Shown here: positions 36,001 through 64,000 of the stretch, one piece after another
Layout of the letters: each line of letters starts with the position of its first letter
Position numbering within the stretch: the stretch's first letter is position 1
Assembly: GCA_050084985.1 (NCBI GenBank)
Contig: JBITNC010000001.1
Span: 5,766,001-5,830,000 of the forward strand
DNA: 64,000 nt
Direction of reading: 5' to 3'
Origin: Nageia nagi
Taxonomy: Eukaryota; Plantae; Pinophyta
Notes under the pieces: model-generated
Database searches by the model: none
Told to the model about the DNA's origin: nothing
Seen by the model: only the letters and a program-made list of their open reading frames with translations
Program-made: the position numbers and the translations under genes

Positions 36001-36785
36001 CTGGACAGGAGGCAGTCTCAACTCAGCTTGAATCCATGCTACGCAGCCACAAGCTCAATCCAAAAGAGGAGGATAAGCTCATCTGGCCACTTACCCCCTC
36101 CAGGTCATACACGGTTAAATCAGCCTATAAAGCTCCTCATACTGCTGCACGCTCCCCTTGGCCTCCAACAGTTTGGTCCAAAGTGTGGAGAAACAGAGCA
36201 TGGCCTAAGGCCCAGTTTTTTCTATGGACAGCCACTCACGATAAACACCTTGTGGGGGTCCAGTTGCTCAAACGTGGCTTCTTAGGCACATACAATTGTG
36301 TCTTTTGTGGTGAAGCAGAGGAGTCAGGGCCTCACATCCTATTGCATTGTACCTTCACCATGGAAATCTGGTTCAAATTCCTCTACATCTTTGGCTTACA
36401 GTGGACTATGCCAAGCAATATAGGGAACCTGCTATCCTCATGGGAATACCCCAAATAGAGACAAGTGCCAATGGTAATCTGGAATGCAGCTCCGGCAATG
36501 ATCTGCTGGAATCTATGGATAGAACGAAATAACCGCATTTTCAGAGGCCAACCAAAATTAGTAGACCAGGTTTGGCATATTACAGGCAAAAATTTAGCAA
36601 TGATATGGGCAGCCCACACAGTTGTTGATAATGAAACAAGGCAAGAACTTTCAAACCTTCACCCCTGGGACCACATCCTCTTTGCCTAGCATCTCAAAGT
36701 ATCAAACACTATCGATGAAGCTACACCAGCTGGATCAGATGTAGTAGCTGAAACAAACTTCAGACGAGCTCCAGAAAGCGTCTAG
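33002..36785 (+). pseudogene. LINE ORF2 (APE endonuclease, RT, zf-RVT) with frameshifts at ~34150 and ~35915 and stops at 36456 and 36687
   Basis: SWNTRGL, LIQE, GGDFN, KLDRF, SDHWPI, PGPDG, RPISLCN, KLDMKKAFD, GLRQGDPLSPYLF, FADD, YLGLPL and CVFC..EE..HILLHC. Confidence 0.96.
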
Positions 36786-37118
36786 CACCAGAAAGCGTCT
36801 AGCTCCAGAAAGCGTCTAGCACCAGAAAGCGTCTAGCTCCAGAAAGCGTCTAGCACCAGAAAGCGTCTAGCACCAGAAAGCGTCTAGCTCCAGAAAGCGT
36901 CTAGCACCAGAAAGCATCTAGCTCCAGAAAGCGCCTAGCACCAGAAATCATCTAGCTCCAGAAAGCGTCTAGCACCAGAAAGCGTCTAACTCCAGAAAGC
37001 GTCTAGCACCAGAAAGTCTAGTACCTAGAAGTCTAGCACCAGAAAGTTGAGCTCCACAGACGAGCCCCAAAAATGAGCTCCAGAGGTGAGCTCCAGAGAC
37101 GAGCTCCAGAGACGAGCT
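36765..37118 (+). repeat. 17-bp minisatellite (CCAGAAAGCGTCTAGC[A/T], ~14 copies) followed by 13-bp GAGCTCCAGAGAC units in the LINE 3' UTR
   Basis: Seen directly in the sequence. Confidence 0.95.
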
Positions 37119-37367
37119 TACTGCATATGCTCCAGGGGGGCCCCATCAGCGACCTTAGTATTCATACTAGTAGTCCTAGTAATCTTAGCGGTTTGATTTA
37201 GTATCTTGTACAGCATGTCTAACTGTGCTCACTGTAGCTTCCATAAGCTTGACATGTCTTTCAGCCTCCTTTGCTGGATTGGCAGTAATGACCATTATGT
37301 AATTTTGTTGACTGGTTAATCAATAGAATTTATTTACTTACCAAAAAAAAACATATAATTGATAGAC

Positions 37368-40776: not shown

Positions 40777-41902
40777 TGATGAGGCGAGAAATGAGATCGT
40801 TTTTGTTGTAACTCTATGAATGTATTTTATTGCTTGGAACACTACGAGACATTATTATTATGTTTTAGCTTATATGACTATTATATTTATAAGTAAATAC
40901 ATATTTGTTTTATCTCCATTTATAAGATGTTGGTAATGATTATTATTATATTTGAATGTTGAATGTTCATATTTTGCATCAAGTAATAATAATATGGTTT
41001 AAGTAAGAAACAACTTTAGAAATAGTTCTAGATGGACAAACTTCAGAGACAACTTCAGAATGTTCAAGCTCCATAATTATCTAAAAGGACCAAATTCAAA
41101 ATATATTTCAAAGGGATCACTTCATAATCATTTTAATAGGAAGCTTCATAGACATAACACATTCGCATAAAGTGTTTTGTTTCCTAGATGTCATTTTCTA
41201 TAAATACTCCATAACTCTAATAGAAGATTGTAACAAATTTTAAGATGCTAATCTAAAAGGATAATTATCAAACCTAAATAAGGGTATAATAAAGGATACA
41301 CAAACAAAAATCTGAGGTTGACTAAGTCTAAAGATTTGTTAGCAAGCTGGATATTTACTTGATCTTTTCTTTATACATATCTAAGCGATTCATAGTCTAA
41401 ATTAGGATTTTGTTTCAAATAAACCTATGAGTCATAGGGAATGTAATCAATTAGCATTAAATATTTTATTAAGTTTTTAGAATAAATTTACCTTATTCTT
41501 TCATAAGAAGATTAGCAAGGAACCATTATGAATTGTAAACTCGGTAGTTTTATTTGAAGATTATATATTTTCCAGTTTTTGAAGAAGTTAATACAAATAT
41601 CATTCATTCTACATTTTTAAAGTTTTATCTATGAGCTCTGTTGGAAGGAGGAGGACCCACTCTAAACAACTATAGTCTCTAATATTTATTATTGTAATTC
41701 AACATTTTATATTATGTACTACAACATTTATTTTAATATGAGTGTGAGTATGTGTGATTTATTTGAAAGAGTTTAGCTTATTTTTGGTATAAGTTATTAT
41801 TTTTATTAGATCCATAATATTTAGAATAGAGTATCAATTGCATATAACCTTAGGAAACCAACCCATGATATGATAAAGTAAATGATGAATTAACACACAT
41901 CA
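40777..41902 (+). repeat. Athila-like 5' LTR (1126 bp)
   Basis: Aligns with 63445-64000 from TGATGAGGC onward and is followed by the PBS at 41903-41924. Confidence 0.88.
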
Positions 41903-43957
41903 TTTTTGCCATCATTGCCAAGGATTATAGTTCTCTCTTATGTGTAGTGAAAAGTAACCACCTTTTATAGAAGTGGAGCACCAGCTCATTTGAGCTAACT
42001 GGTCCCTAATTGTTGGACAAAAAAAGGCTCATTATACATTGAAAAATAAATGGTGTTGGTTGAAACTATTTTTTAGGAAATTTCATGATAGTATTGTTGT
42101 TAGTATCACATAAGAAATTATGTATAGCCATGTTTCCTCAATTCTAGGGTAATAGAGATTTAATGAAAGTGATCATATCTGAGTATTATGAATTCTATTG
42201 AAATAATACTACATGGATAAGTAGATCTATTAATAAATCTCTATTTTATAATAGACTGAGTGATCTAGAACAATTGACTATCTTGCATTTTGAGAAGAAC
42301 TATTTTAAAAAGTGAGTAGTTGTTTAAGTTTTGTATTTATTCAGAATGGATGAATAGGCTTAGAGATGAAAGGGGGAGATTTATTAGTAGAGGTAGAATA
42401 ATAAAAGTAGAGGTAAAGGTAGATCATAATCAAAATTACCCAAGAAAAGTACCCCTAATCTAGGATCAAGTTCAAGCTCTCATCAAGCTAGTGTTAAAAA
42501 AGAAATTATTGTTGAACAAGTTACAACAACATTTGATGCTACAAAATTGGAAGAATGATTTGCTAAGAATGTTTTTAATTTAGATTTTTCTAAGGAAGTT
42601 GGATAAGACATAAAGAGTGATAGTAGTTCTAGAACTCTAGAAGAGCATCCTTTGGAAATAATTCCTACAAAATTGACTATCAAGAAGGTAGTAAGGTTTA
42701 CACAAATCATTTCACCTTTGCCTGGGCATTTTTCTTCAAGTGATACTAATTCTGAAGTAGAAAGAAAATAACTAAAATATCATTCCATATTTTCTACAAT
42801 TGAGGACCCTTCAAATTTGAAAAATACCTTCATTAACCCTTTGATAATAATGTCAGGAGGTAGTGCAATTGGAAGTGGACCTTTAGGTGGAGCTAGACCA
42901 ACTAATAGAACCTCCACTTATCCAATTGTAATCAACTAGAATACTGTAGGTCATGATCAACCAATGAATAATATCTCACCATATATTTTTCCTAACTTCA
43001 AGGGTCTTCCTAGTGAAGATCTAGATCAATTTCTGTTTGAGTTCAAGGTACTTTGTAGAACCTATGATTATGAATCTAATGCATAGAAATTGAAGTTTTT
43101 TCCATCAAATCTAAAGGATAATGCAATGAGATGGTTCATGGGATTAGTTATTTATTCCATTTCTAATTGGGTAGACATTAAAAAGGTATTTTTGGATAAG
43201 TATCAAAAGTATTGTAGAGTGAAGGATCAAAAAGATGAATTATTCAGAATCAAACAAGGTGGAAGAAAATTTGGAAGACTATTTGGATAGATTTTTGTTT
43301 ATCCATAAAAGGGTCGGTACTCTTATTGACCAAAAATTTGAAAAGACTATATTTTTGAGGGGATTGATAGACTCTTCATTAGATGTATTAATATAATGGG
43401 AAAAGAAAATATAAGTATCTTCACTATGGATGACATAGTGGAACTATGCAGAAACTATTCTAGAACAAAGACTTCTACTCGAAAAATCAAACCTCATAAA
43501 CATTATGATAATGTTGTTAGTGAATTAATTGATGAACTAGAAAATTTTAAGATAAATATTCTTGTTGAACTAAGTCTATTAAATAGAATAACAAATAAGT
43601 CAAACAAGGTAAGGGAATCTTAGGAATCTCTAGCAGTATATAGTCCAAGATGTAGAAAGAAACATGCACTATAGGAGTTTCCTCTTAATAAGATTAACAT
43701 ATGCATTTTTTGTAATGAGAGGCATACAACTAATTAATATGATTATTTGACTATAGCTTAGATGTCTGTAGCAAATGTGATAACATCTAAAAATGCTATT
43801 AGTCCGAGAATGAATGTTGAATTTCAGAACATACCTATTATGAAACCATGGTGGAACATTTCATTTCTACAACCTTTGGTTCAATAATCTCCACCATGGA
43901 TGCCACCTAATTTAGATTGGTTACAATATGCTTAAAATCAATAATGGGGAGGACCAT

Positions 43958-46900
43958 TGATCCAAAATGGATTTCGAAGTCTTAAAAAAGGTGATTTTTC
44001 AAGTTTATAATTTTGTTAATTATTCTCTTCCATATTAAAGAGCTCTCTTCCATGATTCTAATGATTCAAATGAAAAATAAAATAAAGCTATGGTTTGTAA
44101 GCTATGGCTTTTCAAAATTTGAAGTTAAATATAAAAAATGCAAAATATGCATGGAAGGCTCTATTGATGAACTCATAGGATCAAATCATGTTGATTCATA
44201 GCTTAAAATATGAATCATTGGTACCTCATGTTATGGTGAACATGTGGTTAAAATTTAAAGGCATTTGGATTAAATAATTGAAAGTTATGGCACTCACAAA
44301 ATAGTAAATTATCATTCTACGTTCATGATAGTCAAAATTTTGACAGCTACTAGGTTCAAATCTGCATTGGAGGCTAACTTGATGATGATTATTGGAGCTA
44401 CCAATAAGGATATAAAGTGTGAAATTTGGACCAATTAATATAATTATATCCAAGAACACTTGGATCAAATTTCTTGACATTTGGAATTATGGTCATGAAG
44501 TTGTGGTCATGACAAAATGGCACCAGAAGTAGTTTTAACAATTTTGCAAAATCCAAAAGGATAGGAGAATATAACCATATGAGGCCACAACAATGCTATA
44601 GAAATACAAATGAGGAGATTATTATTGTGGGTATGAGCGAGCATATTGTAAAGGAGGAAAAATAACAAATATTATCTTATCACCATATAACCATAAACTA
44701 CAAATTTGAAATCCCTTAATGTTATAAAAGGGAACATGAAGTTTGCAAAAAGTTAATTCTTTAGTGTGGATTTCCTTCCAAGGGGAGTGAGTTAGTGTAG
44801 GTTTGAAAAGAATGTAGAAGACTCTATTTTATTGTAAACTCCATGGAAAATAACAAATCCATGAGAGTAATATTGGAGGTGCATTTCAAGCTTGCATAGA
44901 AGAAGAAAAAGAACATGGACAAGATTATTGCCATGATGGAAAGAAAAAAAAGATAAAGAGAAGTTCTAGAGATGTCATCCTAGGAAAAGAGACATGGAAC
45001 TATGCTCAAATACTTTCGTAGGAAAGATAGTCGTATTCAAGAAAGAGATTCAATGGAGAGCCTACAGTGATCATGTGATTCAGCTTTGACAAACAAAAGA
45101 GTGAAGCAAAAAGGATCATAAAATTAACATTGTAAAATGGACTCTATAATAATGGATTGCTATTTGCTAGATGTAGACCACATAGGTCGAACCAGGGTAA
45201 CTATGTGTGTACATTATTTTGTGTGTTTTTGATTTGGTGTGCATTTTTATTTCCATAAGCACTAAAATGAACAAAATGTGAAGATCCAAATTAAATCCTG
45301 AAGTAGGGTTTATAGATCAAGTTGGTATCAAAGCAGTTCTTTTATTGAAAGTTGATTGAGCTTGTTAGAAAAAAAAGAATGAGTGATTTATTTTTAAAGT
45401 TTAGTGTTGTGCCTACTTCAAAGTTAAGAGAACCTAATCTAATGGATTGGATTCATGGTTTGAAAGAATGTGAGGTTGAGGTAAATTTTCATTTTCAAAG
45501 TTAGCAATTTTCATTAGCATTAGATCAAATATTTCCATCATAAAATTATTTCAACATGAATTCTGGTGGGAAGATAAGGGCCCATCTTCTTGACAGTTAT
45601 GATAACTGAGGAAGTTATGTTGAAAGTGAATATTCTTATTCTCTTGATTCATTGAGAATACAAAGTGATGTACCTAAAAATGCCAAGCGAATTCAAATTG
45701 AGGAGCAAATTAAAGAAGGTGATTCCAAGAAGGTGTAAATCTATATTTGTGTGAGGATTATTTTTCTCATTATTTTGATCAAAAGCCCCTAAAATGGGAT
45801 GAGTGATCCAAAATGGATTTTGAAGTCTTAAAAAAAGGTGATTTTTCAAATTTATAATTTTGTTAATTATTCTTTTCCATATTAAAGAGCTCTCTTTCAT
45901 GATTCTAATGCTTCAAATGATGAATAAAGTAGAGCTATGGTTTGTAAGTTATGGCTTTTCAAAATTTGAAGTTAAATATAAAAGATGCAAAATATGCATG
46001 GAAGGCTCTATTAACGAACTCACCATGAGTAGCTCATGTTGATTCATAGCTTGAAATATAAATCATTGGTACCCCATATAATGGTGAACATGTGGTTAAA
46101 ATTTAAAAGCATTTGGATTAAATAATTGAAAGTTATGTTATGGCACTCACAAAATAGTAAATTATCATTCTCCATTCATGACTTGGTCCAAATTTTGATA
46201 GTTGCCAGGTGCAAATCTATGTTGGAGGTTAACTTGATGATGATGCATGGAGCTAGCAATAAGGATATAAAGTGTGAAGTTTGGACCAATTAATATACTT
46301 ATATCCAAGAACACCTAGATCAAATTTCGTGACATTTGGAATTATGGTCATGACAAAATGGCACCAGAAGTAATTTTAATAGTTTTGCAGAATCCAAAAA
46401 GTTAGGAGAATATAACCATATGAGGCAAAAATAATACTACAAAAATACAAATGAGGGAGATTATTATTATGAGTATGAGAGAGCATATTGTAAAAGAGGA
46501 AAAATAACAAATATTATCTTATCACCATGTAGCCATAAACTCCAAATTTGTAATACCTTAATGTTATAAAAGGGAACATGGAGTATGAAAAAAGTTAAGT
46601 CCTTTAGTGTGGATTTCCTTCCAAGGGGAGTGAGTTAGTGTAGGTTTGAAAAGAATGTAGAAGAGTCTATTTTATTTTAAACTCCATGGAAAATAACAAA
46701 ACCATGAGAGTAATATTGGAGGTGCATTTCAAGCTTGCATAGAAGAAGAAAAAGAACATGGACAAGATTATTGCCATGATGGAAAGAAAAAAAGATAAAG
46801 AGTAGTTCTAAAGATGTCATCCCAGGAAAAGAGATGTAGAACTATGATCAAAGAATTTTTTTGAAAAACGAGTCATCTTCAAGAAAGAGATTCATTGGAG

Positions 46901-47160
46901 AGCCTATAGTGATCATGTGATTTGGCTTTGATAAATAAAATAGTGAAGTAAGAAGGATCATAAAATTGACATTGTAAAATGGACTCTATAATAATGGATT
47001 ATTATTTGCTGGATGCAGACCACATTGATCAAACTAGGGTAACTATGTGTGTACATCAGTTTGTGTATTTTTGATTTGGTGTGCTTTTTATTTTTACGAA
47101 CACTAAAATGAATAAAGTGTGAAGATCCAAATTAAATCTTGAAGTAGGATTTACAGATCA
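43958..47160 (+). mobile_element. Non-autonomous LTR element with ~1.36-kb LTRs (43958-45319, 45804-47160) and a 484-bp internal domain
   Basis: TSD ACCAT (43953-43957, 47161-47165), TGATC...GATCA termini, PBS TGGTATCAAAGC (45323-45334) and a purine-rich tract before LTR2. Confidence 0.93.
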
Positions 47161-48188: not shown

Positions 48189-51100
48189 TGTAACAACCCT
48201 ATTTAAATATAAACACATAATACCATCCATCCCATACACTCAAGAGGTGAGCACAAAATGTTTTCCCTCTAAGTAAATAAAACAAGTAATTGAATTTAAT
48301 CAATTCTAAATGTGTTTGGAAGTTGCTTGAAAATGCTACGAATTTTAATTCACAATATGACTAGTATTGTTCCAAGCTACATCATGCATGAGGTCTAGAC
48401 TCTTCACTAACTATATACCATTTTCCATTATTTAACTTAACTCATTAAATAACTTCACATGACTTGCCCTTGTTTGTTTTCTTGAACATAATGACTTCCA
48501 AATGGTACCATATACCTACCTGTATTTCCTACTATCATCATATCAAGGAAATTTAATACTCCAAGGTCCATTCAAGCTTGGGTATTTCTAATTTATCTTA
48601 GCCTAACTCGCTTGAAGATAAATCTACATCCCTTAAATTAATAATCATGCTTTACTTAGAGCTTTGCTTAAGTCTACAGTTAGGTTTAAGTATCCACACA
48701 ATAAAACCCACTATGAATTAAGAGTAAATCATTCCCTTATAAGAGATATTATATTATCTTTATTCCCACATATAAGCAAGGGAGTTAGGTCCTAGAAACA
48801 TAGTACTTTGCATAAAATATGAGATTTTCAAACCAATCATTATCATTATCCATAAAGTATCAAGTAATACTAAACATCATCACATTTAAGTAAGTATCAT
48901 CATATAATGTGAACTTTTCAAATCAAGTAAGCATTATAAAGTACAAAGCAATATCACATTCAAGTAAGGTAATTCATTTGCTAAACTACTCTTTAATAAA
49001 AGAATAGCACTTAGTTTTTCAAAGACTAATCTTTCTTAAATCCAAATATATCAACTTTGTACAATAATACAATCATTCTAAAAAGGAAGTAATAATTCTT
49101 TTCAAAGTCTCTTCATAAGGATAACAATGGCCTTGCTATTTATTTATCAAATCAAATAGCAGGTACAATACATTCAAAACCTATAGAAGGAATTTATCAA
49201 ACTCCTTTCCCATACTAAGATCAAAGCTTTGCTGCTTTATGATGGACGATAGCTCAAGAATGGTTGGATCAAATATAGTCTTGGGTTTCCTCTAAAATGC
49301 AACTACATGCTTTGCCATTTTAAGGAAATGTTCCAACAACTCTAAGAACTCTAAAATGTCAACTCACATTTTAAAACAAGCAAACAACTTTATTTCAAAA
49401 CATCAATTCCCATTTTAAAATAAATCAACATCTAATAATCACAACTCTATTTTAAAATACTACCCTATTTTAAAATAATTAAACAAACCCTATTTTAGAA
49501 TACAGCATCCTAAAATAATTTCAACATTATTTTAAAATGCTTCCCTATTTTAAAATAACTAAATAAACTCTATTTTAGAATATAATACACTATCCTAAAA
49601 TAATTACAATATTATTTTAAAATACATCCTTATTTTAAAATAAATAAACAAACTCTATTTTAGAATAAAATACAATATCCTAAAATACTTACAACATTAA
49701 TTTAAAATGCATCCCTATTTTAAAATAAATAAACAAAGTCTATTTTAGAATGAAATACAATATCCTAAAATACTTAGGATATTATTTTAAAATACATCCC
49801 TATTTTAAAATAAATAAGCAAACTTTATTTTAGAATATAATACAATATCCTAAAATAATAACAACATTATTTTAAAATACATCCCTATTTTAAAATAAAT
49901 AAACTCTATTTTAGATTATAATACCATATCCTAAAATAATTATAATTATATTTTAAAAATAATACCACACTTATTTTAAAATATTTAAGAATACATCATT
50001 CTCTATTTTAAAATAATACCACCCTATTTAAAATAAAGAAACACCTTATACATTCAAATATCATTTTTGATAGTAACACATTTATTTCGTTTCAACACCA
50101 TCCCAAAACCCTTTCACCTAGATCCAAATTAAAATAAAAAATACTAATATACTCTCTAATTTGTAAAATAACATAGTAAAAGAACAAATAATTAAAGAAA
50201 ACCCCTAAATTAACCCATTTATGCACACACTTCGAAAAGGGGGAGAAAGCAAAGTCAAAGTGAGGTTTAAATGGGCATGTACAGTCCCCAAGGAGCTAAC
50301 ACATCCCATATAGAGCTTCCATTGTAAAAAGGTAAGGGGGACGAGAGATGTGGGACTTGGAATCCTCACATCATCCCTGGCTCTACAAGGTGGTGTATGG
50401 TGGTGCATGGGAGTTCCTAGTCCCATGTTACCCCAAAGGAAGCAAACGGAGTGGGGACTAGGCCCATGTTGGTTTTTGGGAGCTCCCAATAGACAACATA
50501 ATGCCTTAGGCTCTAAGCCAGGCCCATGTGGCTTTGGGAAGCCCCTTTTGCCAATGTGAGGCCAAAAGGCTCCACTAAATTCCCTTAATTGGGATTTTTG
50601 ATTTGTGTGGTCTTCTAAGCCACAAGGTACAATTCCCATTAATGGGGGCTTTTTAAAACTTTAAAAACATACTTTAAATTATAAAACCTCCTTTCAATCC
50701 TATACACAAATTTCAAAACCACTATATTTTTAAATGGAACAATCTAGTATGAGAATAAACTAAATCCTCAACCAATCAAAATTTAGTAATACTAGGAGGT
50801 AATAATGACTTGTAGGTAAATAAAACTAAGTACTATTACTGAAACTCAATCCCATAATTATCGAAGGACTTGGCTCCAAAATTATAGAACTTTGCTACTC
50901 CAAAATTAATGAAAATAAGAATGATCCAAAATCTCTACCCTAGGGCTCTATTTATAGTTTTCAAATAGGGCTAGAATTAGAAATTAATAGGGAGTGACAA
51001 CACCACTTAAACTCAAGTGAGTGGGATTTAATTCCTAAGTAGAAATATCTTCCCACTTAGTCATAAATAAAAACCCTAGTGGACTGAGTTCTATTAGCAC

Positions 51101-51970: not shown

Positions 51971-54900
51971 CCTTGGTTAGCTACAACAACTACATTTATC
52001 AACTATATATCAAGAGGTATGACCATTTTATATGGTCATAATTATATAAAACTTTCTTTATATCCTCCTGCTCAACCTACATTTGAATGCCAAGGTCAAA
52101 TATGAATTGATGAACTAGAGTTTAATGAACCAAAAAGTTTTGTAGTACTTTCTACAATCAATGTTATAGAACATGTGGAAGAATTATATGAAATACATGA
52201 AATTTTTGAACAAAATATAGCTTCAACAATGGTCATAAAGGTTTGCGAGCCATTAGGATCAAATCTTCATGATGACATCTTCAATATACGATAACAAGAA
52301 CAACCAAACTTCTTATCTTTATTTAAATGTCCTCTTAAACATATAATTCAAATAAGGGAGGCATATAGGGTAAGAAAAAATGTATTTCATTCTCTATTTC
52401 CTCATCGTTATTCTTTAAATTATTTAATGCAACTTATATATCAAAGCAAGTTAAGTCACACATAAGTGGAAATAATTGAAGTACTCACATAAAAGACTTT
52501 GAATATCAATAGTTGGTTGACATTCAAAGAAGATGAACAAGCATTCAATGTTTTGAAATCTCACACTTTAGGATTTGCATGGGATTATTTTGACATGAAT
52601 GTAATTCATCCAGATATTTTTACTCATCATATATACATTGATGATTCTAGATCTATTAGACAGCCACCTAGATGGGTAAATCTAGTAGTAAGAAATATTA
52701 TACAACATGAAATTGAAAAACTATTGAAAGTAGGATTCATATATCTTATGTTTCATCTTTAGTAGCTTTCCCCAAAAAAAATGGAAAATGGAGAATATGT
52801 GTGGACTACAGATGTTTGAATAAGCCTACACATAGGGATCATTTTCCTTTGCCATTCATTGACCAAGTCTTGGAAAATCTTGTTGGTAAAAAATAATTCT
52901 CATTTCTTGATGGTTTCAGAGGCTATAATCAAATTCAAATTGCAAAAGAAGATCAAGAGAAGACATCATTTATTTGTTCCTCTAGACATTTTGCTTATCA
53001 AGTTTTACCATTTGGATTATGTAATGCCCTTGCTACTTTTCAAAGAGCTATATTAGTCATCTTTGTTGATCTAACTAATGATTTTGTAGAAGTATATATG
53101 GATGATTTCATGGTGCACGGGAACACTTTTGAAGAAGCATTACATAATCTTGAAAAAGTGTGTGTTAGGTGTGAAACATATAACTTATCATTAAGTTATA
53201 AAAAATATTTAATGCTCATGTAAGAAGGAATTGTCTTAGGACATCATATTTTTATTGAAGGAATTAAAGTAGATCCAAAGAAGGTGAAGATTATCAAATA
53301 ATTTTCGACCGCATAAAATCAAACTGATGTGAAGTTTTCTTGGATGCACTAGTTACTATAGGAGATTCATTTCAAATTTTAGCAAGATCGTAGTCCCATT
53401 ATTCTCATTGCTACATAAAGATAATGAATTTGAGTTAACATATTATGAAAAGACATTTTAGACAATCAAGGAGAAACTCATGATTATCCCTGTATTAAGA
53501 AGTCCAAACTAGAAGTTACCTTTTTACATTCATACTGATGCATCAAATTATGTTATTAGAGCAATACTAGGTTAAAAACATCAGAATAAAATATATTATG
53601 CCATCTATTATATCAACAAGAATTTAGTGGGAGCTAAAAATAATTAAATCACTATAGAAAATGAATTTTAGGAGTAATACATGACATCAATAAATTTAGA
53701 AATTATATTATTGGTTACCAGGTTTTTGTTCACACATATCATGTTGCCATTAGGTATATTATGAATAAACTAGTAGTAAGTGAAAGAATTATAAGGTGGT
53801 TACTTTTATTGCAAGAATCTAATGTGACCATTGTTGATAAACCAGGTAAACCCAATGTTGTAGCTAACTTCTTGTCCAAACTAAGAAAAAATGAAGATGA
53901 TGAACAAATGCAGGATTCTTTTCTTGATGAAAGATTATTTGCAATATTTGTACATGCAACTTGATTTGCAGATATAGTTAATTACTTAGCAAAAGGAAAA
54001 ATTCCAATTCATTTCTCTTTAAAATAAAATAGAAGTTTAATCAGAGAAAGCTAAACATTCAAATGGATAGATGGGATGCTCTTTAAATATGGATCATATT
54101 ATGTTCTTATAAGATGCATCAAAAAGGATGGTGTATTTGATGTTTTAAGAGCTTTTCACAATGAACCATCAAGAGGTCATTATTCAAAGAAGATAACAAT
54201 ATAGAAGGTATTGGGAATTGGATATTATTGGCCTTCATTACATAGAGATGTGCAAAATTATGTACATCAATGTGATCAATGTTAAAGAATGAGAAAATAC
54301 ACATTCACTACACAAATGCTATTACATTTGCAAATTGTTCTTGAACCTTTTAAACAATGGGGAATTGATTTTGTTGGACCTATCAAATCTCCATATCAAG
54401 GTAAAAAGCACATTCTTATTTGTACAAACTATATCACAAAATGGGTAGAGGTCTATGCTCTTGCACAAGCTAAAGAAGAAAAGGTAGTTATTTTTCTATA
54501 TAATAACATTATGATTTTCTTAGTATTAGATCAAGGACCATAGTTTATATCTAATGTGATTAAGAATTTTGTCAATCATTATTAGATTAAGCATAAGAAA
54601 ACTTCTCCATAACATCCCTAAATAAATGGTCAAGTTGAGGTGACTAATATAGAATTGAAAAATATTCTTATAAAAATTGTAGCATCTCATAAGAAAGATT
54701 GGGAAACTAGACTTTTAGAAGCATTTTGGGCATATAATGTCACATGGAAATCAACTACAAAGTTTATACCTTATGAGCTAGTCTATGGAAAAAATCCTTT
54801 GTTACTAATAGAATTTGAGATCTAGACTCTGAGAATAATTATGAAAATTGGGTTAGATCTTAATGAACCCCAACATAAAAAGATGTTATAGCTGAATGAA

Positions 54901-57826
54901 TTGGATGAACACATAATTGAAGCATTGTCAAATATCAAAATTCTTTAGCAAAAAAGGAAACTATGCCATGATAAGCAAATGAAACATGTAAAATTCACTC
55001 CAATAAAGTGGGTCTTATTATTTGATTCCAAGTATTAAACCTTCTTAAAAAATTACAAACTAGATGGTTGGGGCCATATCAAAATTTGCAAGTCTTTGAT
55101 AATGGAACAATTAAACTTTAATTAATTGTGACTCTAGTAGAATCATGTTGGTAAATGGGCATCGAATACAACCTTACACTCTACGCATGAATAAGGAGGA
55201 GTTTACAGAATAAATAAAGAAATAAGAGTTATGTTTGATTGAGGAAGATTTATCTTCCTCATCCAAACAACCTTGATCCATGATAGTTTAGAAGAATAAG
55301 ATTGAGCTTAGAAATAGAATCAATATGGATTTTGAATGGATAATCATAAAGGCAGTCAGATAGATGAAAACTAGAAAATTATCTAGGTGAAAACCTCTAT
55401 GTCTTATATTCATTATCTATTTCTAAAAAAAAGAGAAAAAGAACAAAAAAGAAAAAGAAAAAGATTCATATTCTAAAGATTAGTTGAATATTATAAAGAA
55501 TTTCAATATATATTTATGGTTTTAATGTTTTACCATTACTTTAGAATAAATGTGATCTTTTTGGAATGATTATTCTATAGACAAATGGCCTATAGTTACA
55601 ACTTTAGAATTGTAACTATAGAATCCTTAAAAGCTTAAACTAGCTTCATAATACTTAAAGGCTTGAGAATACTTGAGCACTTCAAGGAAACCTATCAAGA
55701 ATGCCAAAACAAGGACACATCATCTATCTTGGATGAAGAAGTGGGCATCTTGGCAATGATCACTAACCATGTGTCATATCAGTAGCAAATTGTGTCAAAT
55801 CCAACTAACAACACTTGTAAGATACATATTTAATGGTGGAGGTATGTATTTATTTTTAAATTACTAGTTGATTTAAGCCTAAATCAGATCTTAGTAATCT
55901 CACACATGTTTCAAGTCAAAATCATTTAATTATGAGTTAGGATGATCACATGAAAGAGATAAGTGTCCAAATCTAAATGGGAAATAAACATGTTATATGT
56001 TAGCCCCAATTTGACATGAAATCATGCAAGTTGGTGAAAATATGGTGATAGTATGTAATCAATGAACATAGTAGTTTATATCAGCTGAAAAAATTTATCA
56101 ACCTTCATTTGAAAATCACTTTAAAAGAATTGAGAAGGGATAAAAGGGTAGTGAGATTTTTCCAAAAATTCCATATTTTAGAATTCTTTGAAAAGTTTCA
56201 AGGTTCTAATGAGTAGCTGGTTCTATAGTTTGTGGAAAAATTTGAAGAAAATTCTATACAGTTGAGGGATCATACAATACCCATTATTATTGAGATTATT
56301 GCTATAATATTTAGACTCCCTATAATAGGTGATGATTTGATTATGAAATAGCAATATGATGCTTTGCTTGATAGGTTCCATTGGAGAGGAGAACAAAGGG
56401 CCAAGAAATACATCACTACCATTTATGTATAAGGAATTAAGAGGAAAACTCTTCCAAACTAGTGGACAGAGGTGGAATTATGGATTATCAAATTCTTAAC
56501 CTATGAGGGACAACATGGAACAATCATGGGCCATCACTTGAAATTGCTCATTAATTTAAGGTATGGGTCAGAACTCAACTATAACATTTCAAAGTTTCTA
56601 TATCAAAGTTTGCAAAATATGTCTAGATGGGTTAGGGAAATGCAAGGAATAATCTTATGAACTTGAAGCACCATGGTTTAATTACAATGCTCTATAGAGA
56701 ATATTTCTTAGCTCAAGATAATGGAAAAGAATTATGGGTAGGTTTCTTAGGGTATGATCCATATTCTATACCTGAAACCTCAACCATGTAGGAGGAAACT
56801 TTAGGCAGCCCTAGTGAAACCATATTTAGACCAAAAATAAAGGTTTGTCCCACATACACATAAATACCTAAATTTGTAGTGGGATCCATTAGTACTACCT
56901 AGGATGAATTGCCTAAGGACCATTCCAATTCCTTAGAAATTGATGATACTAAGGAGGAAAACACATAATTACCTAAGTCTTCAAACCAACCATACCATAA
57001 GGAGGTTATTTTTAAATACCCTTCAATATCCCACTCAACCCCTATTTACAATGGTGAAAAGAGAAAATTTGAAAGAGGTAAGGAGATAGAGATTAAAAAG
57101 GTATGAATATAAGTCATAGTTTTTCATGAAATTTAAGAGGATATCTACACAGTTAAGGAAGAAGGAAGTGGCTCAAACATCAACACCTCTAATTAAGAGA
57201 CACTGTAGAAAAGAAACTTAAGAAGAGAAGGAATTTGGCTATTTCACAACCTTTGAAACCCCTAAAAAAATGATAAACCTAGATGAAGAGGATAATGAAA
57301 CCAATAATTAGAATGTATAAATGGGATAATTTCCTATACAAGAAGAAGGAAATGATATTCAACAACCTCAAACTAAGGAAGAACCAAACTCTATCCAATT
57401 GACCATATATGTAACTGGGCAATTGCTAAAAGAACTTGAGATACAAGTTCATGAACTCATGCCTAGATTTCATCTTTTGGAAAAGGAAAATGCCAAAATA
57501 AATGCTAAGAAAAATAAATTGGAGATTGAGAATGATAAATTAGTCAAATAATGCATAGAGCTCACCTTAAGCAACTTAGAACTTGAGGAAAAATACAAGG
57601 CAATTGAGGAATTAATAGTTCAAATTCAAAATGTGAAATTGCCTCATCCAGTTGTAGGTGAGGGTGATGCTGTTATTATACAAGTATCAAAGGCACTTAC
57701 AAGAAAATAAAGGGAAGTTAAAAACTTAAAACTTCAAAATACAAAGCTAATAATACAATTGGTCAACATACATGAAAAGCATTCTAAAGAACTCAACATA
57801 CTTAAGAAAGAAGTCAAGGACATGCA

Positions 57827-60800
57827 TTTTTTTTATTAATGGGTAAATTTTGTATTAATAAAAAAGGTGAAGTTTATAAGGATGTTCACCAACCTTTACA
57901 AAAGGATTATCTAAAAATTAGTTTTTTGAGTGCTAGATTGTCCTTGCTAATACAACAAATCTATGAGGATGCTAATATTAAGATTCCATGTAAATTCATT
58001 AGGTTTATCTTTTAATTTACCTTTACCAAAACTACTACATATCCTTATGTAACTAGGAGTATCAAAAATAAGCACCTATTAAACTAAAACCAAGACATAG
58101 AAAAAGCTATCTATAACCTACAATAAAAACTAAACCATTTCTTCATAGCTGAACTTGTAGAATCTAATGTAGGTATTCTTGAGAAGGATTTCTTTGATAC
58201 CTAGATGCTTCCCAACATCTTCATACTTCTCACTTTTTGCTCCTCTTTTGAGTCTGGCCTCTTTTAGCATCTCCTTGTGTAGTTTAGGGCTCATTACTTT
58301 CTTGAAGCCTACTAAGGTCTCTTTACTTATTTTTTTAAGGTGTCTAGCCCTATTTCTTTGTATGATTTACTTTTTGTTCGATCAATAACTTGGTCAGGAT
58401 GATATTTAGTCTTCTTCTTTTCTTGGGTCATTACAAGATCTTATTTCCTACCCTTGAAAGACTTATCTATCTTTCTTATCTTAAATCGAATAAGGGGGTT
58501 TTTCTCTTCCAATTTTACTACTTGGAATCTTGGTAACCCTACTACATTATGCTTTGAAGTCACTTCCTCTTATATGGCATTCATAGGTGTTGGAGAGGAT
58601 AGGTCTCTTAGTCTATATGACCACTTAGTTGGGTTTTTTGTGCTCTCACTTCTAACTAGGTTGGCTTCCAGATACACTTGTGGACTATTTATCTAAGTTT
58701 GCTATTTTGGACCTACTAGCTTAGACCCCCCATCACTAAAACTACTACATTCTTGTATATTCATACATAATAAATTCTTTATTAAAGCCTCGGTGTACTT
58801 TACTTGCAATCATGGGTTCATTTTAAGATCCCCGGGAGTTTTTCTGGAGCAAACAAAACAGGCCGGAGTCCGGAAGTAAAGAATTCCAGAAATGTGAAGA
58901 TGATGTCACAGAGGATAAGATAGTCGCATTTTGGCAAAGATCGGGTTCCGGAGATGATGATGTCAGCAAGGGATGATTAAAATACCGGAGTCAGTGGATA
59001 AAGCGTTCCGGAATGAGATGATAAAAGCTCAGTTGTGGAAAGGCCCGGGTTCTGGAGAAAGCGAGTAAAACATTTTCGGAAGGGGAAGATGACATCACGG
59101 GGAGAACAACATTCACATTTTTGAATGAAACTGGGTTCCAGAGATGATGAGGTCAGTAAGGAGCTATCAAATAGTCGGAGCCAGTGAGCAAAATATTCTG
59201 GAGGTAAGAGATGACGTTAGCGATTCCGGGCCTTAACCCAAAATCGGAGCCCAGAAGTGATGAGGTTAGCAAGAGATAATCAAAGAAGCTGGAGCCGATA
59301 ACTTAAGTGTTCTGGAAGTAAAGCATTCCAGATAAAATGATGACATCACAGCGGAAAGGATAAAGCTCAGTTTTGATAAAGAATGGGTTCCGGAGATGAT
59401 GAGGTCAACAAGAGATAATCAAAGAAGCCGAGCCAGTTAAGTAAAGAATTCCAGAAATGTGAAGATGATGTCACGGATCTTAGGTCTTAACCCAAAACCG
59501 AATCTCAGAAGCGATGAGGGCAGCAAAAAAGTGATCAAATAGCCGAAGCCAGTGAGTAAAACATTCCGAAATGTAGAGACGAAGCTAGCAAAAGGTCAGA
59601 TCACAATTGTCAAGAATCATATCATCTGTAATCTTGCCCGTTTTTGTAATATTCTGCCAGGTGGCGTATGTAGGTAGTATCAGTTAAAAGAAGACTAGAA
59701 TCTTGAAGCCATTTTGTAACCGTTTCTATTCTGCACTTCTTGTAACTGTTGTTACTACAGTATAAATATATGAAAATAAAATGAGAAAAAGGTCGGAAGC
59801 CTAGTATTGCTCTTTACATTTGTTCTCGAAGACCTGTAGTTTTTATCAGTAATATGAAACCATCTTGACCTTTCTTATCTAGCGCTCGTAATTGTCATTC
59901 TTAATTTGGTTACATCGTGGCAGCTTGGCTTGTTTCCTGAATGATAATTGCGGGTTGCTAGTATAACTGTGTCTGCTACATGGTAGAGTAAAGCTGGGAA
60001 ACTATTAAAGAGTGAGAGCTTGTACCGTAGCTGCTACACTAGATTCAGGCCAAGGTTTCACACACTGTGAAAGCCCGCGCTGAACTAGTGATCCACCTTT
60101 ACTTTCTCTCTTGTTACCCTAAGCCTTTTTGCTTAAATTCCTTGCACTCTACTCCTTTTATTTCTTTCCTGTTACCCTAACCCTTTTGCTTGAATTCCTT
60201 GCATTTTACTCCTTTTATTTCTTTCCTGTTACCCTAACCCTTTTGCTTGAATTCCTCACACTCTACTCTTTTATTTCCTTTCCTGTTACTTTTTCTACGC
60301 CCAATAGATAAGGAACCGGCCTTCTCCTGTTCATGATTTACTTTGGTTAAGATTGCTCACGGTGCATATTTACACAATCCTAATCAACAATTCTCTATGC
60401 ATCCTCTCTCTACTCTTGATCATCGAAGAGAAACTACTTTACTTTGAGACATAAAGGAGTGCTAGTTGATGTATGGCATCCATAGGATTATCCTAAGGTT
60501 CACTAGTCATTAGGATAGAAATTCTCTCCTCCTCTCTTGGAGGTTCCATGCACTTCATATCCTCTAAAATTGGTGTATGATATTGCACTATTTTTGGCAC
60601 TATTTCTGTTCTGCTTCTTGCTTCTACCAGAACCTTCTCACTTGACATTTCCTTCTCCAAAATAAGTTTTCTCTTAATTATGATACTTCCTCTTGGTTCT
60701 TCCTATTCAAGTAGGCTGGAGATTGTTCTTCCTATCCTACTATTTAGATATTTAACTCTAATTTTTTCTTATCCCTTCCACTTACACATGACTTTCCTTC

Positions 60801-62399
60801 TTTTGGGGGATATAATCTCCTTATCTTTAGTGTTCTTGACACTAAGTCTCCCTCCTCTCATCCCCCATTTAGCTCCAATTTCCATGAGGGTATCATCCAT
60901 CTAAGTATCCTCTTGATATTCACTTTGTGACGAATCTTCACTAATTAATTGGGGGAATTGATATAAGAAGCCTTCTTTTACATCACTTTCTTCTTAATGC
61001 TTTCCATGCTTTTTATCCAATTTCTCATTAGATAGGGACCTTTGCTGGTGGATTTAACCTCCTATTTGTTATTACTAGGTGTTATCCCCTTCTTTGAGTC
61101 TTTTTCTTGAACCTTCTTGCCAGGTTTGTAGACTCTACCATCAATAATGAATTTAACCCTAGGAATTTTCTTAGGGGTCATAGCCAAAGCTCTATCTACC
61201 TCTAATTTGATAACAGCTCCATACAAGGGTAAATGAGCTCTTTCCTTTTTAACCTTATCAATTAATTTTGCTAGAGAATTGAAAATGAAGAAGGGGAAGT
61301 TTACCTTATCCATATATTAAAATATGAAGTGATTCAACTAGAAGAAGTGTGAAGTGAGAAGCATTTTGTATCGCCCTTCCAACCTTACATATTTGATCAA
61401 AACTAAATCCATATCATCCCAAGGGTTGAGGATTGATTCTCGCACCACCCCTATCTGATATTTCTTTATATCTATTGATTTTATTACTTTCATCAAGAAT
61501 TTATCTTTGCCCTTTAGTTTGTTCAATTTTTCTTCTCTTCTAATATGTAGACCTTCATTTGGTAGCATGATAGCCAATGCAATCATAATAGGACTAAACA
61601 CAACGTCCCTTCCTTTAATAATACACTTACCATTCCCCTAAGATTTTGCTACTGCTAGGGAAATCTCATTATCATGCCCTTTGCATACATTAATAAAGTT
61701 CTCTATCTCCCCCTCACAAATAATATTCCACACTAACGGGTTGATCTTTACCTCATTTGGGGAATAAGGCTCTACTCTTACTAGGTCTCCCCCCATCTCT
61801 TCTACTCTAAAAACACTCCTGCTACTCTCCAAAATAGCTTAGCTTGTTAGGAAAACTTGAAAACTGATAACGACACTCTTACCACCCTCAGTAATTATGG
61901 CTATAAGTGTCTCTTGTCACTAGGAGTACTTCTCACTCTTGAATAAAAAGTTGGCCTAGGGTGGCTCATGGGAAAGGTCATTGGGAACTCCAATTGAGGG
62001 TCTTAAGGTAATGCCTAATTCTTCATTGGATCTAACAGGTCAAGGATTTGGCTAATATTCTAGAATACCTCACTTTCCTTCAAAAATTCATGGTTTCTAA
62101 CACCATCTACTAAAATAGGTGCTTCATCTACTATTCTCTACCCAATTTGATATAGTTTGTTCAATAGGAATTTGACACTTTGGCATAGATAAGCATGGTT
62201 TTAGCAGTACAAAGTGGCTCAATTTAATGAATCCTCTACATAGGACTTTGGTGCATTTACACATATAAGTATGGTCTAACAGTACAAATTGAAAAGGTGT
62301 TATTAATCTTGATGATGAGTCACCAATCCTCAGGTCCCCTATGTCATAGGTGGACAAGTTTTAAAACAACACCTCCATGTCTACCCCATCTTCTTCCCT
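57827..62399 (-). mobile_element. Element B: poly(A)-tailed, TSD-flanked, RT-less retroposed element with one decayed ORF (61796 to ~58130), ~2.95 kb without its nested LTR
   Basis: TSD AGTCAAGGACATGCA(TTT) at 57812-57826 and 62400-62414; T8 tract at 57827-57834. ORF reads MGGDLVRVEP..VWNIICEGEIENF..KGHD..LPNEG..NPWDD..KYVRLEG..VNFPFFIFNSL. Confidence 0.9.
58779..60389 (+). mobile_element. Solo LTR (~1.61 kb) inserted in element B
   Basis: Ends ...TAATCAACA and is flanked by ATTCT (58774-58778, 60390-60394); the 5' TG is eroded. U3 repeats at 58850-59590, TATAAATA at 59761 and three 57-bp repeats at 60110-60290. Confidence 0.72.
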
Positions 62400-63444
62400 A
62401 GTCAAGGACATGCATTTAATTAAGAAGGCTATAATAGATCTTTATACCATATTTGAAGAGGTAATACAATTAAAACAATCTTCAATTTTATATAGTATGT
62501 ATTTAAAGGAACAATTCCTTAAATGGCAAGTTAGTAGGATTAAGAAAGGTCTTCCTTACAATATTGATAATGATAAGTTACTTCTTTATGTTTATTATAA
62601 AGTGAGGGGAGAAGAAATGTTTTTGTTGTGTTAATTTTACATGCATAATTTTATTTTGAATGGAAATACAAGGCTTTTCCCTTTTTTGTATATTGGGGAC
62701 ATCCAGTTACATTCCTTTGTATCAATTCTCCAAAATCAAATAAAATGGTACAAGGATAGAGGAGTACAAATAGGAAATTTCTTAGGATACTTTCTTTGTT
62801 CATTAGCAACCCATGTATTCTAGGAAAGTAGAAGTTAGCTTTAGAATAGTTCTTATTAGGAACAACAATGTAGAGAGATATAAAGCTATACTTGAAACTT
62901 GTTTACAATATTGCCAAAATGGTATTAACAAACATTTTGAAAGGGCTTTACAAGCATGTACCATTAGGTGGAATATGTAGATACAAGAGTATAAGGAGAT
63001 GGAAATAATCAATATAAGAAACCTAAAATGTAGCAGAAGAAGAGCTAAAGCATTGATTAGACACATTAGGGATAACCCCTTGAATTGGTGTGGTCAGTAG
63101 TATAGACCTCCTATAATTTTGCATCCAACACTAACATTGGGAGATTTTCATATTCAATATGATTCAAGATTTAGAGCATGGATGTTAGAGATCAAAACTA
63201 CTAAAGGGCTATGGTATCCAAATGATAAACTTGATTGGTTTGCTCATAATGTTAAACTTCTTGCAATAACATATGAGATAGTACAACCCTATGATTTGAA
63301 TCACCTGATGAAATTTTCCAATGACCCAAACAATATAGTACAGTACAATAAAAATAAGGAGGAATATGAAGATGAGTAAGTGGTCCAAGAATAGATAAAT
63401 TTTTGATTTTTTGAGGAGGAGGAATATTCTAAGTTAAAGAGAAA

Positions 63445-64000
63445 TGATGAGGCAAGAAATGAGATCCCTTTTGGTAAAAATTTATGAATGTATTTTGTTG
63501 CTTGGAACACTATGAAACACTATTATTATGTTTTAACGTATCTGAGTGTTATATTTAGAAGTAAATACATATATTTTTTTTCTTTATCTCCATTTATTAG
63601 ATGTTGTTAATGATTATTATTATATTTGAATGTTGAATATTCATATTTTGCATCAAGTAATAATAATGTGGTTTAAGTAAGAAATAACTTTAGAATTAGT
63701 TCTAGATGGACAACATTCAAAGACAACTTTAGAATGTTTGAGATCTAGAATTAACTAAGAGGATCAACTTTAGAATATGTTTCAAAGGGATAACTTCATA
63801 ATCATTTTAATAGAAAGCTTCAAAAATATAACATGTTGGCATAAAGTGTTTTTTTTTTTGAGGTATCACTTTTTGTAAATACTCCACAACTTTAGCAAAA
63901 GATTGTAATAGGTTTCAGTATGATAATCTAAAAGGATAATCATTGAACTTGAATAAGGGGAAAAATGAGGATGCACAAAGAAATATATGAGGTTGACTAT
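63445..64000 (+). repeat. Athila-like 3' LTR (partial)
   Basis: Diverged direct repeat of 40777-41323, preceded by purine-rich GAGGAGGAGGAA..AAAGAGAAA. Confidence 0.88.

Follow-up and report, generated by a model that had tools for sequence, protein, structure and literature searches.

A putative non-autonomous retroposon with its own gene and no reverse transcriptase in Nageia nagi

HAL1 (half-L1) of mammals is a poly(A)-tailed, protein-coding non-LTR element that lacks a reverse transcriptase (RT) and needs L1 ORF2p (PMC5753468), and HeT-A, a non-LTR element of Drosophila telomeres, carries only an accessory Gag and obtains RT in trans (PMC5537684, PMC2173066). Sadhu of Arabidopsis is a non-autonomous retroposon with poly(A) and target-site duplications (TSDs) of 7–16 bp, which is consistent with LINE mobilisation and is not derived from a small RNA (PMC2848041). 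Accessory genes are also found in other plant transposons: VANC21 is the accessory protein of VANDAL21, a Mutator-like DNA transposon (PMC5735166, PMC10398659), structural homology between VANC and the PMD protein MAIN has been reported (PMC13547354), and plant Ty3/gypsy elements can carry extra ORFs (Steinbauerova et al. 2011, cited in PMC7156037). To our knowledge, there are no RT-less protein-coding non-LTR elements other than derivatives of LINE gag/ORF1 (HAL1, HeT-A). Here, we describe an insert, B, in a 64,000-nt stretch of the Nageia nagi genome (assembly GCA_050084985.1, contig JBITNC010000001.1, positions 5,766,001 to 5,830,000; hereafter the window), which is likely a decayed copy of a retroposon of the poly(A) (non-LTR) type, non-autonomous and with a single gene of its own and no RT.

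Insert B occupies positions 57830–62399 of the window on the minus strand, flanked by a perfect 18-bp TSD, the exact direct repeat AGTCAAGGACATGCATTT (Table 1). Across the window, the only exact isolated repeats of at least 16 nt lying 1–7 kb apart were the TSD pairs of B, of a second insert (copy A) and of a LINE, all remaining repeats of this kind being contained within long duplicated blocks. The minus strand of B terminates in TTAATACAAAATTTACCCATTAAT followed by a short A-tail (5 nt; counting the TTT of the TSD raises this to 8), and the empty site reads ...GCATTT|AATTAAG, which places the primer-strand nick at TTT/AA. A retroposon inserted by target-primed reverse transcription (TPRT) is expected to show a TSD of variable length (~7–20 bp) and an A-rich 3′ tail abutting the TSD at a T-rich/AA nick; B meets both criteria, and the hallmarks are present in B, copy A and the neighbouring LINE (TSDs of 18, 16 and 18 bp, respectively). 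B was inserted by TPRT of the L1 kind, in which nicking at TTT/AA would have been followed by priming on the short A-tail and by a second nick 18 bp away, yielding the TSD.

The target was the extra 3′ ORF of a Ty3/gypsy element, the plus-strand ORF of which is unbroken over the empty site of B; pieces of gag, RT, RNase H and integrase lie upstream of this extra ORF. B is itself interrupted by a solo LTR. Word depth was 4e3–7e4 over this LTR versus ~20–40 for the body of B, and contigs from two low-coverage DNA runs (X1 and X2) join 58679 to 60390, skipping the LTR. The LTR belongs to a very high-copy family foreign to the retroposon, and the order of events was insertion of B into the extra ORF and, later, of the solo LTR into B. 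Placement of the nested insert at 58796–60359 with a CGGTG duplication was rejected on read depth and loose ends, which gave 58754–60389 with ATTCT.

Table 1. Positions of insert B, its parts and related or neighbouring elements in the window.
Feature	Position	Strand	Evidence or remark
Copy A, diverged retroposon of B's superfamily	26363–28247	-	16-bp TSD TGTATGAAAGCTCTTT, A9 tail
Plant L1-type LINE	31456–37367	+	18-bp TSD; DUF4283, Exo_endo_phos, RVT_1 and zf-RVT matches
Family domain in extra 3′ ORF of host gypsy element	56130–56648	+	HMM i-E 7e-18
Left copy of B's 18-bp TSD	57812–57829	.	Exact repeat of 62400–62417
A-tail of B, 5 A (up to 8 with TTT of the TSD)	57830–57834	-	Sequence read
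3′ UTR of B, with terminus TTAATACAAAATTTACCCATTAAT	57835–58129	-	Stop codon of last ORF piece at 58130–58132
Distal K/E/R-rich part of decayed ORF	58133–58753	-	Stop-free pieces, composition; no homology found
Nested solo LTR, 1636 bp	58754–60389	.	TG..CA; 5-bp TSD ATTCT at 58749–58753 and 60390–60394
Middle K/E/R-rich part of decayed ORF	60395–61163	-	Covered by family contigs
N-terminal domain, ~210 aa	61164–61796	-	HMM, tblastn, fold model; start codon 61796–61794
Leader (5′ UTR, presumed promoter), 603 nt	61797–62399	-	Family contigs reach 62293
Right copy of B's TSD, then AA of nick site	62400–62417	.	Exact repeat

Without the nested LTR, B is a 2.9-kb unit with one ORF. The ORF is decayed, and its initial methionine aligns with the MGGDPV N-termini of Ginkgo proteins. 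The N-domain contains three in-frame stops and zero frameshifts; by tblastn, it is 51% identical to P0002 over 164 aa and, from M1, 29–35% identical to the Ginkgo proteins. No coding similarity was found for the leader, nor any homology between the K/E/R-rich tail of the ORF and the C-terminal part of the family, and a coding role for this tail remains a possibility supported by composition alone. B itself is dead, and no RNA evidence was found for its body. The first-pass annotation, made from sequence alone, had proposed a minus-strand insert with a 15–18-bp TSD, an A8 end and a GCATTT|AA empty site, read as TPRT, together with a ~600-nt leader and one long decayed ORF comprising a conserved ~200-aa N-domain and a K/E/R-rich tail. 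The boundaries (TSD exactly 18 bp, A5–8) and leader length held, the TPRT reading is supported for B, and the N-domain is upheld by a family HMM match (below); the tail held in part, by composition without homology, and the interval given for the nested insert (58779–60394) failed.

No RT, EN, gag, LTR, TIR, tRNA or Rfam match was found in B. Neither RT nor EN was detected when ORF pieces were searched with Pfam, when B was compared with the LINE by tblastx or in an HMM scan. Pfam returned nothing consistent for ten stop-free pieces, nothing resembling a PBS, PPT or LTR was seen, and tblastx of B against the remaining window gave a weak match to copy A only, with none to LINE ORF1/ORF2 or gypsy pol. 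Several known builds were rejected on these grounds: a SINE (no tRNA/Rfam match for a Pol III head, and 2.9 kb with an ORF), a HAL1-like ORF1-only element (no DUF4283/zf-CCHC match and no tblastx match to LINE ORF1), and an Athila/Tat-like LTR retrotransposon (B lacks the LTRs, PBS/PPT and gag-pol that its host element has). A 5′-truncated autonomous LINE was likewise rejected, there being no residual ORF2 (RT, zf-RVT) upstream, although a long ORF2–ORF3 spacer is not excluded.

The ~220-aa N-domain belongs to a family represented by ~70 Ginkgo gene models and by plant contigs. A family HMM built without the rows from the window matched B at 61835–61164(-) with an i-E of 6e-55 and copy A at 27726–27253 with an i-E of 3e-30. 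Pfam searches with eight relatives and all 45 alignment members gave nothing consistent, and 0 of 86 family proteins (~70 of them the Ginkgo gene models) carries an RT, integrase (rve) or EN Pfam domain. A few of the Ginkgo gene models are chimeric with PPR, TIR or RuBisCO domains. The gene family is gymnosperm-wide and undescribed in Pfam or the literature searched, in which no paper describing a plant retroposon of this build was found.

Three low-coverage DNA runs hold contigs, 80–90% alike, that cover B from 57867 to 62293, and in two of them a form lacking the nested LTR was seen; because these contigs cover the body of B and include the LTR-free form, the family of B is multi-copy. The databases searched held only fragments of B-type ORFs and none that was intact. 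Were B merely the processed pseudogene of one host gene, the poly(A), the TSD and the absence of introns would be accounted for. However, this rival is all but excluded by the multiple copies of B in reads, by the ~70 Ginkgo paralogues with six TSD- or poly(A)-bounded copies that have conserved UTR ends, and by the presence of the domain in a gypsy element as well.

The evidence for B's own type consists of copy number and the LTR-free form, shared defined ends with different TSDs being largely seen in its Ginkgo-type relatives. Contigs of all three runs stop at 57855–57867, adjoining the 3′ terminus of B. At the other end, one X1 contig diverges at 62293, its last aligned place, and extends 497 nt beyond it, leaving the last 106 nt of B unaligned; B may or may not be a full-length copy. 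In principle, the copy-number contigs could derive from another class of element with a B-like segment. Specifically, a LINE could have retrocopied a (sub)genomic transcript of the gypsy extra ORF to give B, the "family" in the reads then being that gypsy family. The gypsy element that hosts B does carry the family domain in its extra ORF, the contigs are silent on element class, and one diverges 106 nt before the 5′ end of B. Against this, the contigs end beside the 3′ terminus of B in all three runs, B shows none of the PBS, PPT or LTR-like sequence of such an element, no splice-junction signature is apparent at 62293 on reading the sequence, and the stand-alone build recurs in copy A and six Ginkgo-type copies. 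We consider this rival very unlikely.

These six independent Ginkgo-type copies occur in plant contigs as stand-alone units of ~1.7 kb in which a leader precedes a 394-aa ORF; all six share a conserved 3′ terminus followed by poly(A). TSDs of 14–16 bp with one mismatch are present in three copies (L004, L006 and L009/L010), whereas L002 has at most a weak 10-nt candidate. A 5′ motif is shared by three of the four copies with readable upstream sequence: TCGG[AC]CGA directly follows the TSD in L004 and L010, ~300 nt upstream of the ATG, a related start lies a few bases further in for L002, and L006 shows no match. The intact 394-aa ORFs of L001 and L004 differ with a dN of 0.22 and saturated dS (dN/dS ~0.06), and the Ginkgo-type protein is under purifying selection, as judged from these two ORFs at saturated dS. 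No LINE RT was found in 15 related loci. For the QQTW-type loci, an apparent common 5′ terminus was discounted, the similarity running to the contig end.

A further alternative holds that A and B are 5′-truncated L1 copies in which the gene is a third ORF behind ORF2 and the leader is the ORF2–ORF3 spacer. LINE insertions are, as a rule, 5′-truncated. This rival is also favoured by the X1 contig that passes 62293 by 497 nt and by the differing leader lengths of A (~410 nt) and B (603 nt). However, neither leader shows similarity to ORF2 or zf-RVT, the sole LINE of the window lacks a third ORF, L004 and L010 begin with the same motif right after their TSDs (with L002 similar), and LINE RT is absent from the 15 related loci, all of which make truncation an unlikely explanation.

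The first-pass annotation had also listed outcomes that would refute it. Single-copy status with an intron-containing parent gene is not met, B's type being multi-copy in reads; nor are homologues confined to LTR elements or full LINEs, given the six stand-alone copies with poly(A) and 0 of 86 proteins with RT, integrase or EN. An existing database family of this structure was not found in Pfam or the literature searched, a scope without Repbase, Dfam and REXdb, within which the annotation's failure to recognise a described family also held. Of its positive predictions, shared ends with distinct TSDs are largely met for the Ginkgo-type relatives, with B's own 5′ end unsettled, and intact ORFs with dN/dS<1 are met by L001 and L004, not by B-type copies. 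Its statement that B has no RT, EN, gag, LTR or TIR of its own held, and its view of B as neither a classical SINE nor a truncated LINE is supported, with the reservation about the spacer given above. Support likewise extends to its central proposal, a non-autonomous retroposon with its own protein cargo that borrows L1 ORF2p, the mobilising LINE being inferred from TPRT hallmarks only.

The L1-type LINE of the window is a possible relative of B's mobiliser. Within the window, TTAAT..AATTT..ACC, a gapped motif defined post hoc, is confined to the three elements that have an A-tail. When the 3′ ends of copy A, B, the LINE and Ginkgo-type units were aligned locally, the scores were not significantly above shuffles; therefore, a shared LINE-recognition tail is not shown. 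The observed score of B versus L001 was reached in 6 of 500 shuffles, and the other comparisons were not significant. Homology of the 3′ end of B with the Ginkgo-type 3′ hairpin was rejected, as it failed the shuffle test and only a 13–14-nt word is common to both. For the leaders, too, comparison with shuffles gave no significant similarity, neither between A and B nor between these and other families, including the LINE and the Ginkgo type.

The AF2 model of the N-domain has a pLDDT of mostly 80–97, with a dip to ~60 at residues 81–110. Its best PDB match is VANC21 (9lnj/9lnk; Z 6.9, rmsd 4.5–4.6), aligned over 180 of ~190 residues and the sole PDB chain to span the whole domain; identity is ~10%, and a fold shared with the C-terminal domain of VANC21 is suggestive only. 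VANC21 ranked top both on re-alignment of a Foldseek shortlist and in a Foldseek-independent search of 48,161 chains, a Z of 6.9 being "middling" on the tool's own scale. The 45 family members gave no match to VANC, PMD (PF10536) or PF20167 even at E<=10, a sequence-profile search of the PDB with the family found none, and the Atlas score for PF20167 (0.89) fell under its own threshold. The model of the B-type relative P0004 was poor (pLDDT 55) and unusable for fold search. A VANC21/PMD-like fold is thus a suggestion from a predicted model, possible but without a sequence-level link.

In our preferred reading of B as a non-autonomous retroposon, a promoter in the leader would drive an RNA that would be polyadenylated, and an L1-type LINE would supply the ORF2 protein that captures its A-tail in trans. 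We infer that the product of the gene comprises a VANC21/PMD-like N-domain, a charged linker and a C-terminal helical hairpin (Ginkgo type), and propose that it acts as an accessory factor binding nucleic acids, its function being untested. By analogy with VANC21 and VANDAL21, it may keep its own copies from being silenced, or it may package its own RNA and so compete for the LINE enzyme, as do HeT-A Gag and HAL1 ORF1p. A bolder reading, which can only be called possible, is that an ancient superfamily of LINE-dependent retroposons in Ginkgo and this genome persists by means of a VANC/PMD-like protein, a module exchanged with Ty3/gypsy elements; sequence-specific anti-silencing or RNA packaging is, as part of that reading, an equally tentative role. 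If true, a non-LTR parasite would be "paying" with an accessory gene in place of RT. If the function holds, genes for silencing evasion or RNP formation would be portable modules across retroelement classes, with a possible bearing on retroelement persistence in gymnosperms, whose genomes are giant and heavily methylated. The family also flags the ~70 Ginkgo "gene models" as transposon genes.

B resembles HAL1 in lacking RT, encoding a protein, ending in poly(A) and, by inference, relying on L1 ORF2p; however, HAL1 carries L1 ORF1, whereas the ORF of B has no DUF4283, zf-CCHC, RRM or Transposase_22 and no likeness to ORF1 of the window's LINE. With HeT-A, B has in common an accessory protein only and an inferred need for RT in trans, but HeT-A is a telomere-targeted insect element with a Gag-type protein, while the dispersed B has TSDs of the L1 type and, as modelled, a protein like VANC. 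Sadhu and B are both plant non-autonomous poly(A) retroposons with TSDs, although Sadhu is ~0.9 kb and non-coding and B and its relatives have a conserved ORF under purifying selection, as measured in the Ginkgo type. VANC21, the best structural match, is like the N-domain of B a plant-transposon protein, but VANC is carried by a DNA transposon and has been described as restricted to dicots (PMC13547354), and the B family has ~10% identity to it with no sequence or Pfam link. With gypsy extra ORFs and transposon-borne PMD proteins, the connection is that the domain of B also occurs in the extra 3′ ORF of its host; unlike gypsy elements, B has neither LTRs nor gag-pol, its 3′ end is a poly(A) tail and its TSD is 18 bp long. 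Overall, the cargo of B is an accessory gene unrelated to LINE gag/ORF1 and shared with Ty3/gypsy, the predicted model of which is nearest to a transposon anti-silencing factor.

Copy B is flanked by the exact 18-nt direct repeat AGTCAAGGACATGCATTT. Isolated exact repeats of at least 16 nt spaced 1–7 kb apart number only three pairs in the entire 64-kb window, bracketing B, copy A (a diverged second retroposon of the same superfamily) and the LINE, and all remaining repeats of this kind lie within long duplicated blocks; the 18-nt repeat is therefore not a chance occurrence. Five T's and then ATTAATGGGTAAATTTTGTATTAAT come directly after the left repeat on the plus strand, which places B on the minus strand, terminating in ...TTAATACAAAATTTACCCATTAAT and a run of A's. 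The empty site reads GCATTT/AATTAAG, with a primer-strand nick at TTT/AA, and the K/E-rich plus-strand ORF of the host is unbroken once B is taken out, establishing B as a true insertion. The first-pass annotation had claimed a 15–18-bp target-site duplication (TSD), an A8 ending and an empty site of GCATTT/AA; the first and last held (the TSD is exactly 18 nt), but the tail comprises five A's and reaches eight only when the TSD's own TTT is included. B was inserted with the hallmarks of L1-type target-primed reverse transcription.

Coordinates of B, its host element and related features in the window
Feature	Coordinates	Strand	Remarks
B leader	62399–61797	–	603 nt; no coding similarity to anything
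B ORF start (first Met)	61796	–	aligns with MGGDPV N-termini of Ginkgo proteins
B N-domain	61796 to ~61164	–	three in-frame stops, zero frameshifts
B K/E/R-rich stretch	N-domain end to stop at 58130–58132	–	frame shifts along it
B 3′ UTR		–	295 nt
HMM match, B	61835–61164	–	i-E 6e-55
HMM match, copy A	27726–27253	–	i-E 3e-30
HMM match, gypsy extra ORF	56130–56648	+	i-E 7e-18
Isolated repeat pair, B	57812–57829 and 62400–62417
Isolated repeat pair, copy A	flanking 26363–28247
Isolated repeat pair, LINE	flanking 31456–37367
Host gypsy gag	43087–43287	+
Host gypsy RT	52897–53220	+
Host gypsy RNase H	53665–53961	+
Host gypsy integrase	54286–54540	+	weak
LTR-like repeats around host gypsy	40777–41324 and 63445–63999
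LINE	31474–37349		plant L1: ORF1 with DUF4283/zf-CCHC; EN, RVT_1, zf-RVT

The host is a decayed plus-strand Ty3/gypsy element, whose extra 3′ ORF is interrupted by B. Between its gag and protease, a ~1.84-kb unit is tandemly duplicated (43958–47118; 87–96% identity), and an 85-bp tandem array lies within the element at 49411–49960. The LINE carries a 17-bp tandem array of ~20 units in its 3′ UTR (36716–37072), and a lone minus-strand DUF4283 (plant L1 ORF1) fragment at 39577–39873 is the remnant of a different LINE. Elsewhere, two 100% identical direct repeats ~8.4 kb apart (5921–6530 and 14340–14996) enclose long minus-strand ORFs (8034–11678); the arrangement resembles a very young LTR element, called copia in the reader's notes, and may be one.

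A further element is nested in B at 58754–60389 (1636 bp; located from read depth together with loose ends and a joint), in place of the 58779–60394 proposed for excision by the first-pass annotation. Its TG...CA ends and perfect 5-bp TSD (ATTCT) identify it as a solo LTR, and because LTR plus TSD amount to 1641 bp (3 × 547), the frame is the same on either side. Word depth over the LTR is 4e3–7e4 (peak ~68,000, low-coverage runs) compared to ~20–40 in B's body, showing that the LTR family is extremely abundant. Internally it contains a 57-bp unit repeated three times (60124–60294) and irregular units of ~110–190 bp (58869–59590). Contigs of X8, a run guessed to be RNA, align on it.

A 99-aa piece of B yielded only 20 phmmer matches among 1.84 billion representatives, all of them either gene models of Ginkgo biloba or ORFs carried by Logan contigs. 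A profile search returned 86 proteins, ~70 of them Ginkgo gene models and none with an RT, integrase or endonuclease domain. Pfam holds no model for the N-domain family, and no consistent Pfam match occurred in any of 45 members. A family HMM from which the window's rows had been left out has three matches in the window, in B, copy A and the gypsy extra ORF, so that companion annotations of the latter two also held. Within B, the expected ~600-nt leader and decayed ORF with a conserved N-domain were both confirmed; the K/E/R-rich tail, also claimed as coding, rests on composition alone and can only tentatively be regarded as once coding. No LTR, TIR, tRNA-like head or Rfam family was found in B when these were sought. 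B lacks an enzyme of its own, carries a conserved gene and belongs to a repeated family.

Four Ginkgo gene models (P0045, P0052, P0063 and P0095) fuse the N-domain to PPR, TIR, RuBisCO large-chain or ribosomal L3 domains, and are probably chimeric predictions spanning insertions. Four loci on QQTW01... contigs (L012–L015) form a third, diverged branch with 27–36% identity to the B and Ginkgo types; they start MG[GDS]DL..IE as in the family, with a leader of ~240 nt or more, on contigs too short to define ends.

Scanning JGI metagenome contigs gave 15 plant loci, none with a LINE RT. With loci on self-overlapping contigs counted once, six independent stand-alone copies of Ginkgo type were obtained (L001/2, L003/4, L005, L006, L007 and L008–10). 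Each is a ~1.7-kb unit comprising a 250–310-nt leader, a single ORF (394 aa if intact, starting MGGDPV), a ~220-nt 3′ UTR terminating in a small hairpin and ...CCCCTTCTACCTTAAT, and 9–17 A's followed by unrelated flanks. TSDs of 14–16 bp, with one mismatch each, bound L004, L006 and L009/L010; for L002 there is no more than a weak candidate of 10 nt. TCGG[AC]CGA immediately follows the TSD in L004 and L010, a related start occurs a few bases further in for L002, and the motif is absent from L006. The intact ORFs of L001 and L004 differ with dN 0.22 and saturated dS (dN/dS ~0.06). The tests proposed by the first-pass annotation (shared ends, distinct TSDs, A-tails and intact ORFs with dN/dS<1) therefore came out favourably on these copies, whose build and selection make it likely that the claimed family of RT-less, protein-coding retroposons is real. 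Contigs of L001/L002, L003 and L008/L009 are among those overlapping themselves inverted, with identical flanks on both strands, most likely as assembly fold-back artefacts.

Evidence for copies of B's own type comes from DNA sequenced at low coverage, in runs from two organisms and from an air metagenome, whose contigs are 80–90% like B along 57867–62293; only repeated sequence assembles at such low coverage, so B's type is repeated. In contigs of runs X1 and X2, 58679 is joined to 60390 through 69 other letters; this is the form of the family that lacks the nested LTR. B's body occurs in no run recorded as RNA (the one marked 'RNA?' covers only the nested LTR), and B-type proteins in databases are fragments only. 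In contigs of three runs, 72 nt of B (62010–62081) are swapped for 73 other letters. Contigs of three runs stop at 57855–57867, adjoining B's 3′ terminus, and depth at 57859 is ~10 times that of B's body; the last ~40 nt could be common to a larger family, or merely AT-rich.

At the other end, an X1 contig (record 6, 1327 nt) matches B up to 62293 and continues for 497 further letters, leaving B's last 106 nt (62294–62399) unaligned. B may be 5′-truncated, or its 5′ end too diverged for alignment, and two rivals consequently remain possible: (i) B is what is left of a truncated L1 that carried a third ORF, and (ii) B is a retrocopy of a gypsy transcript. The window's LINE has no third ORF. A 3′ signal common to A, B and the LINE is doubtful, because the gapped motif TTAAT..AATTT..ACC, although confined in the window to their three tails (1.6 occurrences expected window-wide from shuffles), was defined post hoc, and local alignments of the compared elements' 3′ ends, and of their leaders, did not exceed shuffles.

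The AF2 model of P0021, a Ginkgo-type protein, predicts an N-domain mostly at pLDDT 80–97 (dipping to ~60 at residues 81–110), then a charged linker that is disordered and, at the C-terminus, a helical hairpin. The sole PDB chain spanning the whole N-domain is VANC21 bound to DNA (9lnj/9lnk; Foldseek probability 0.80, E 0.38), which ranked first both in re-alignment of the shortlist and in an independent search of 48,161 chains. Since its VIA-align Z of 6.9 (rmsd 4.5–4.6, 180 residues aligned) is middling by that program's own guide, a VANC21-like fold is no more than a lead from a predicted model. A structural homology of VANC to the PMD protein MAIN has been reported (PMC13547354), and Atlas pointed to PF20167 with a score (0.89) under its own threshold; no sequence-level membership of the N-domain family in VANC, PMD or PF20167 was found.

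Under the retroposon reading, we infer that Pol II would transcribe the element from its leader, and that the poly(A) RNA would be captured in trans by an L1 ORF2 protein. The encoded protein may either relieve silencing by binding to the DNA of its own element, by analogy with VANC, or package the element's RNA, by analogy with HeT-A Gag and HAL1 ORF1p. The first-pass annotation recognised no described family, which held within Pfam and the literature searched (Repbase and Dfam were outside the scope): neither describes the cargo gene or its sharing with gypsy extra ORFs. Elements of the same kind as B are already known in HAL1 (PMC5753468) and HeT-A (PMC5537684), and Sadhu (PMC2848041) is a plant analogue, albeit non-coding; what appears to be new is the cargo, and its occurrence in gypsy extra ORFs as well.
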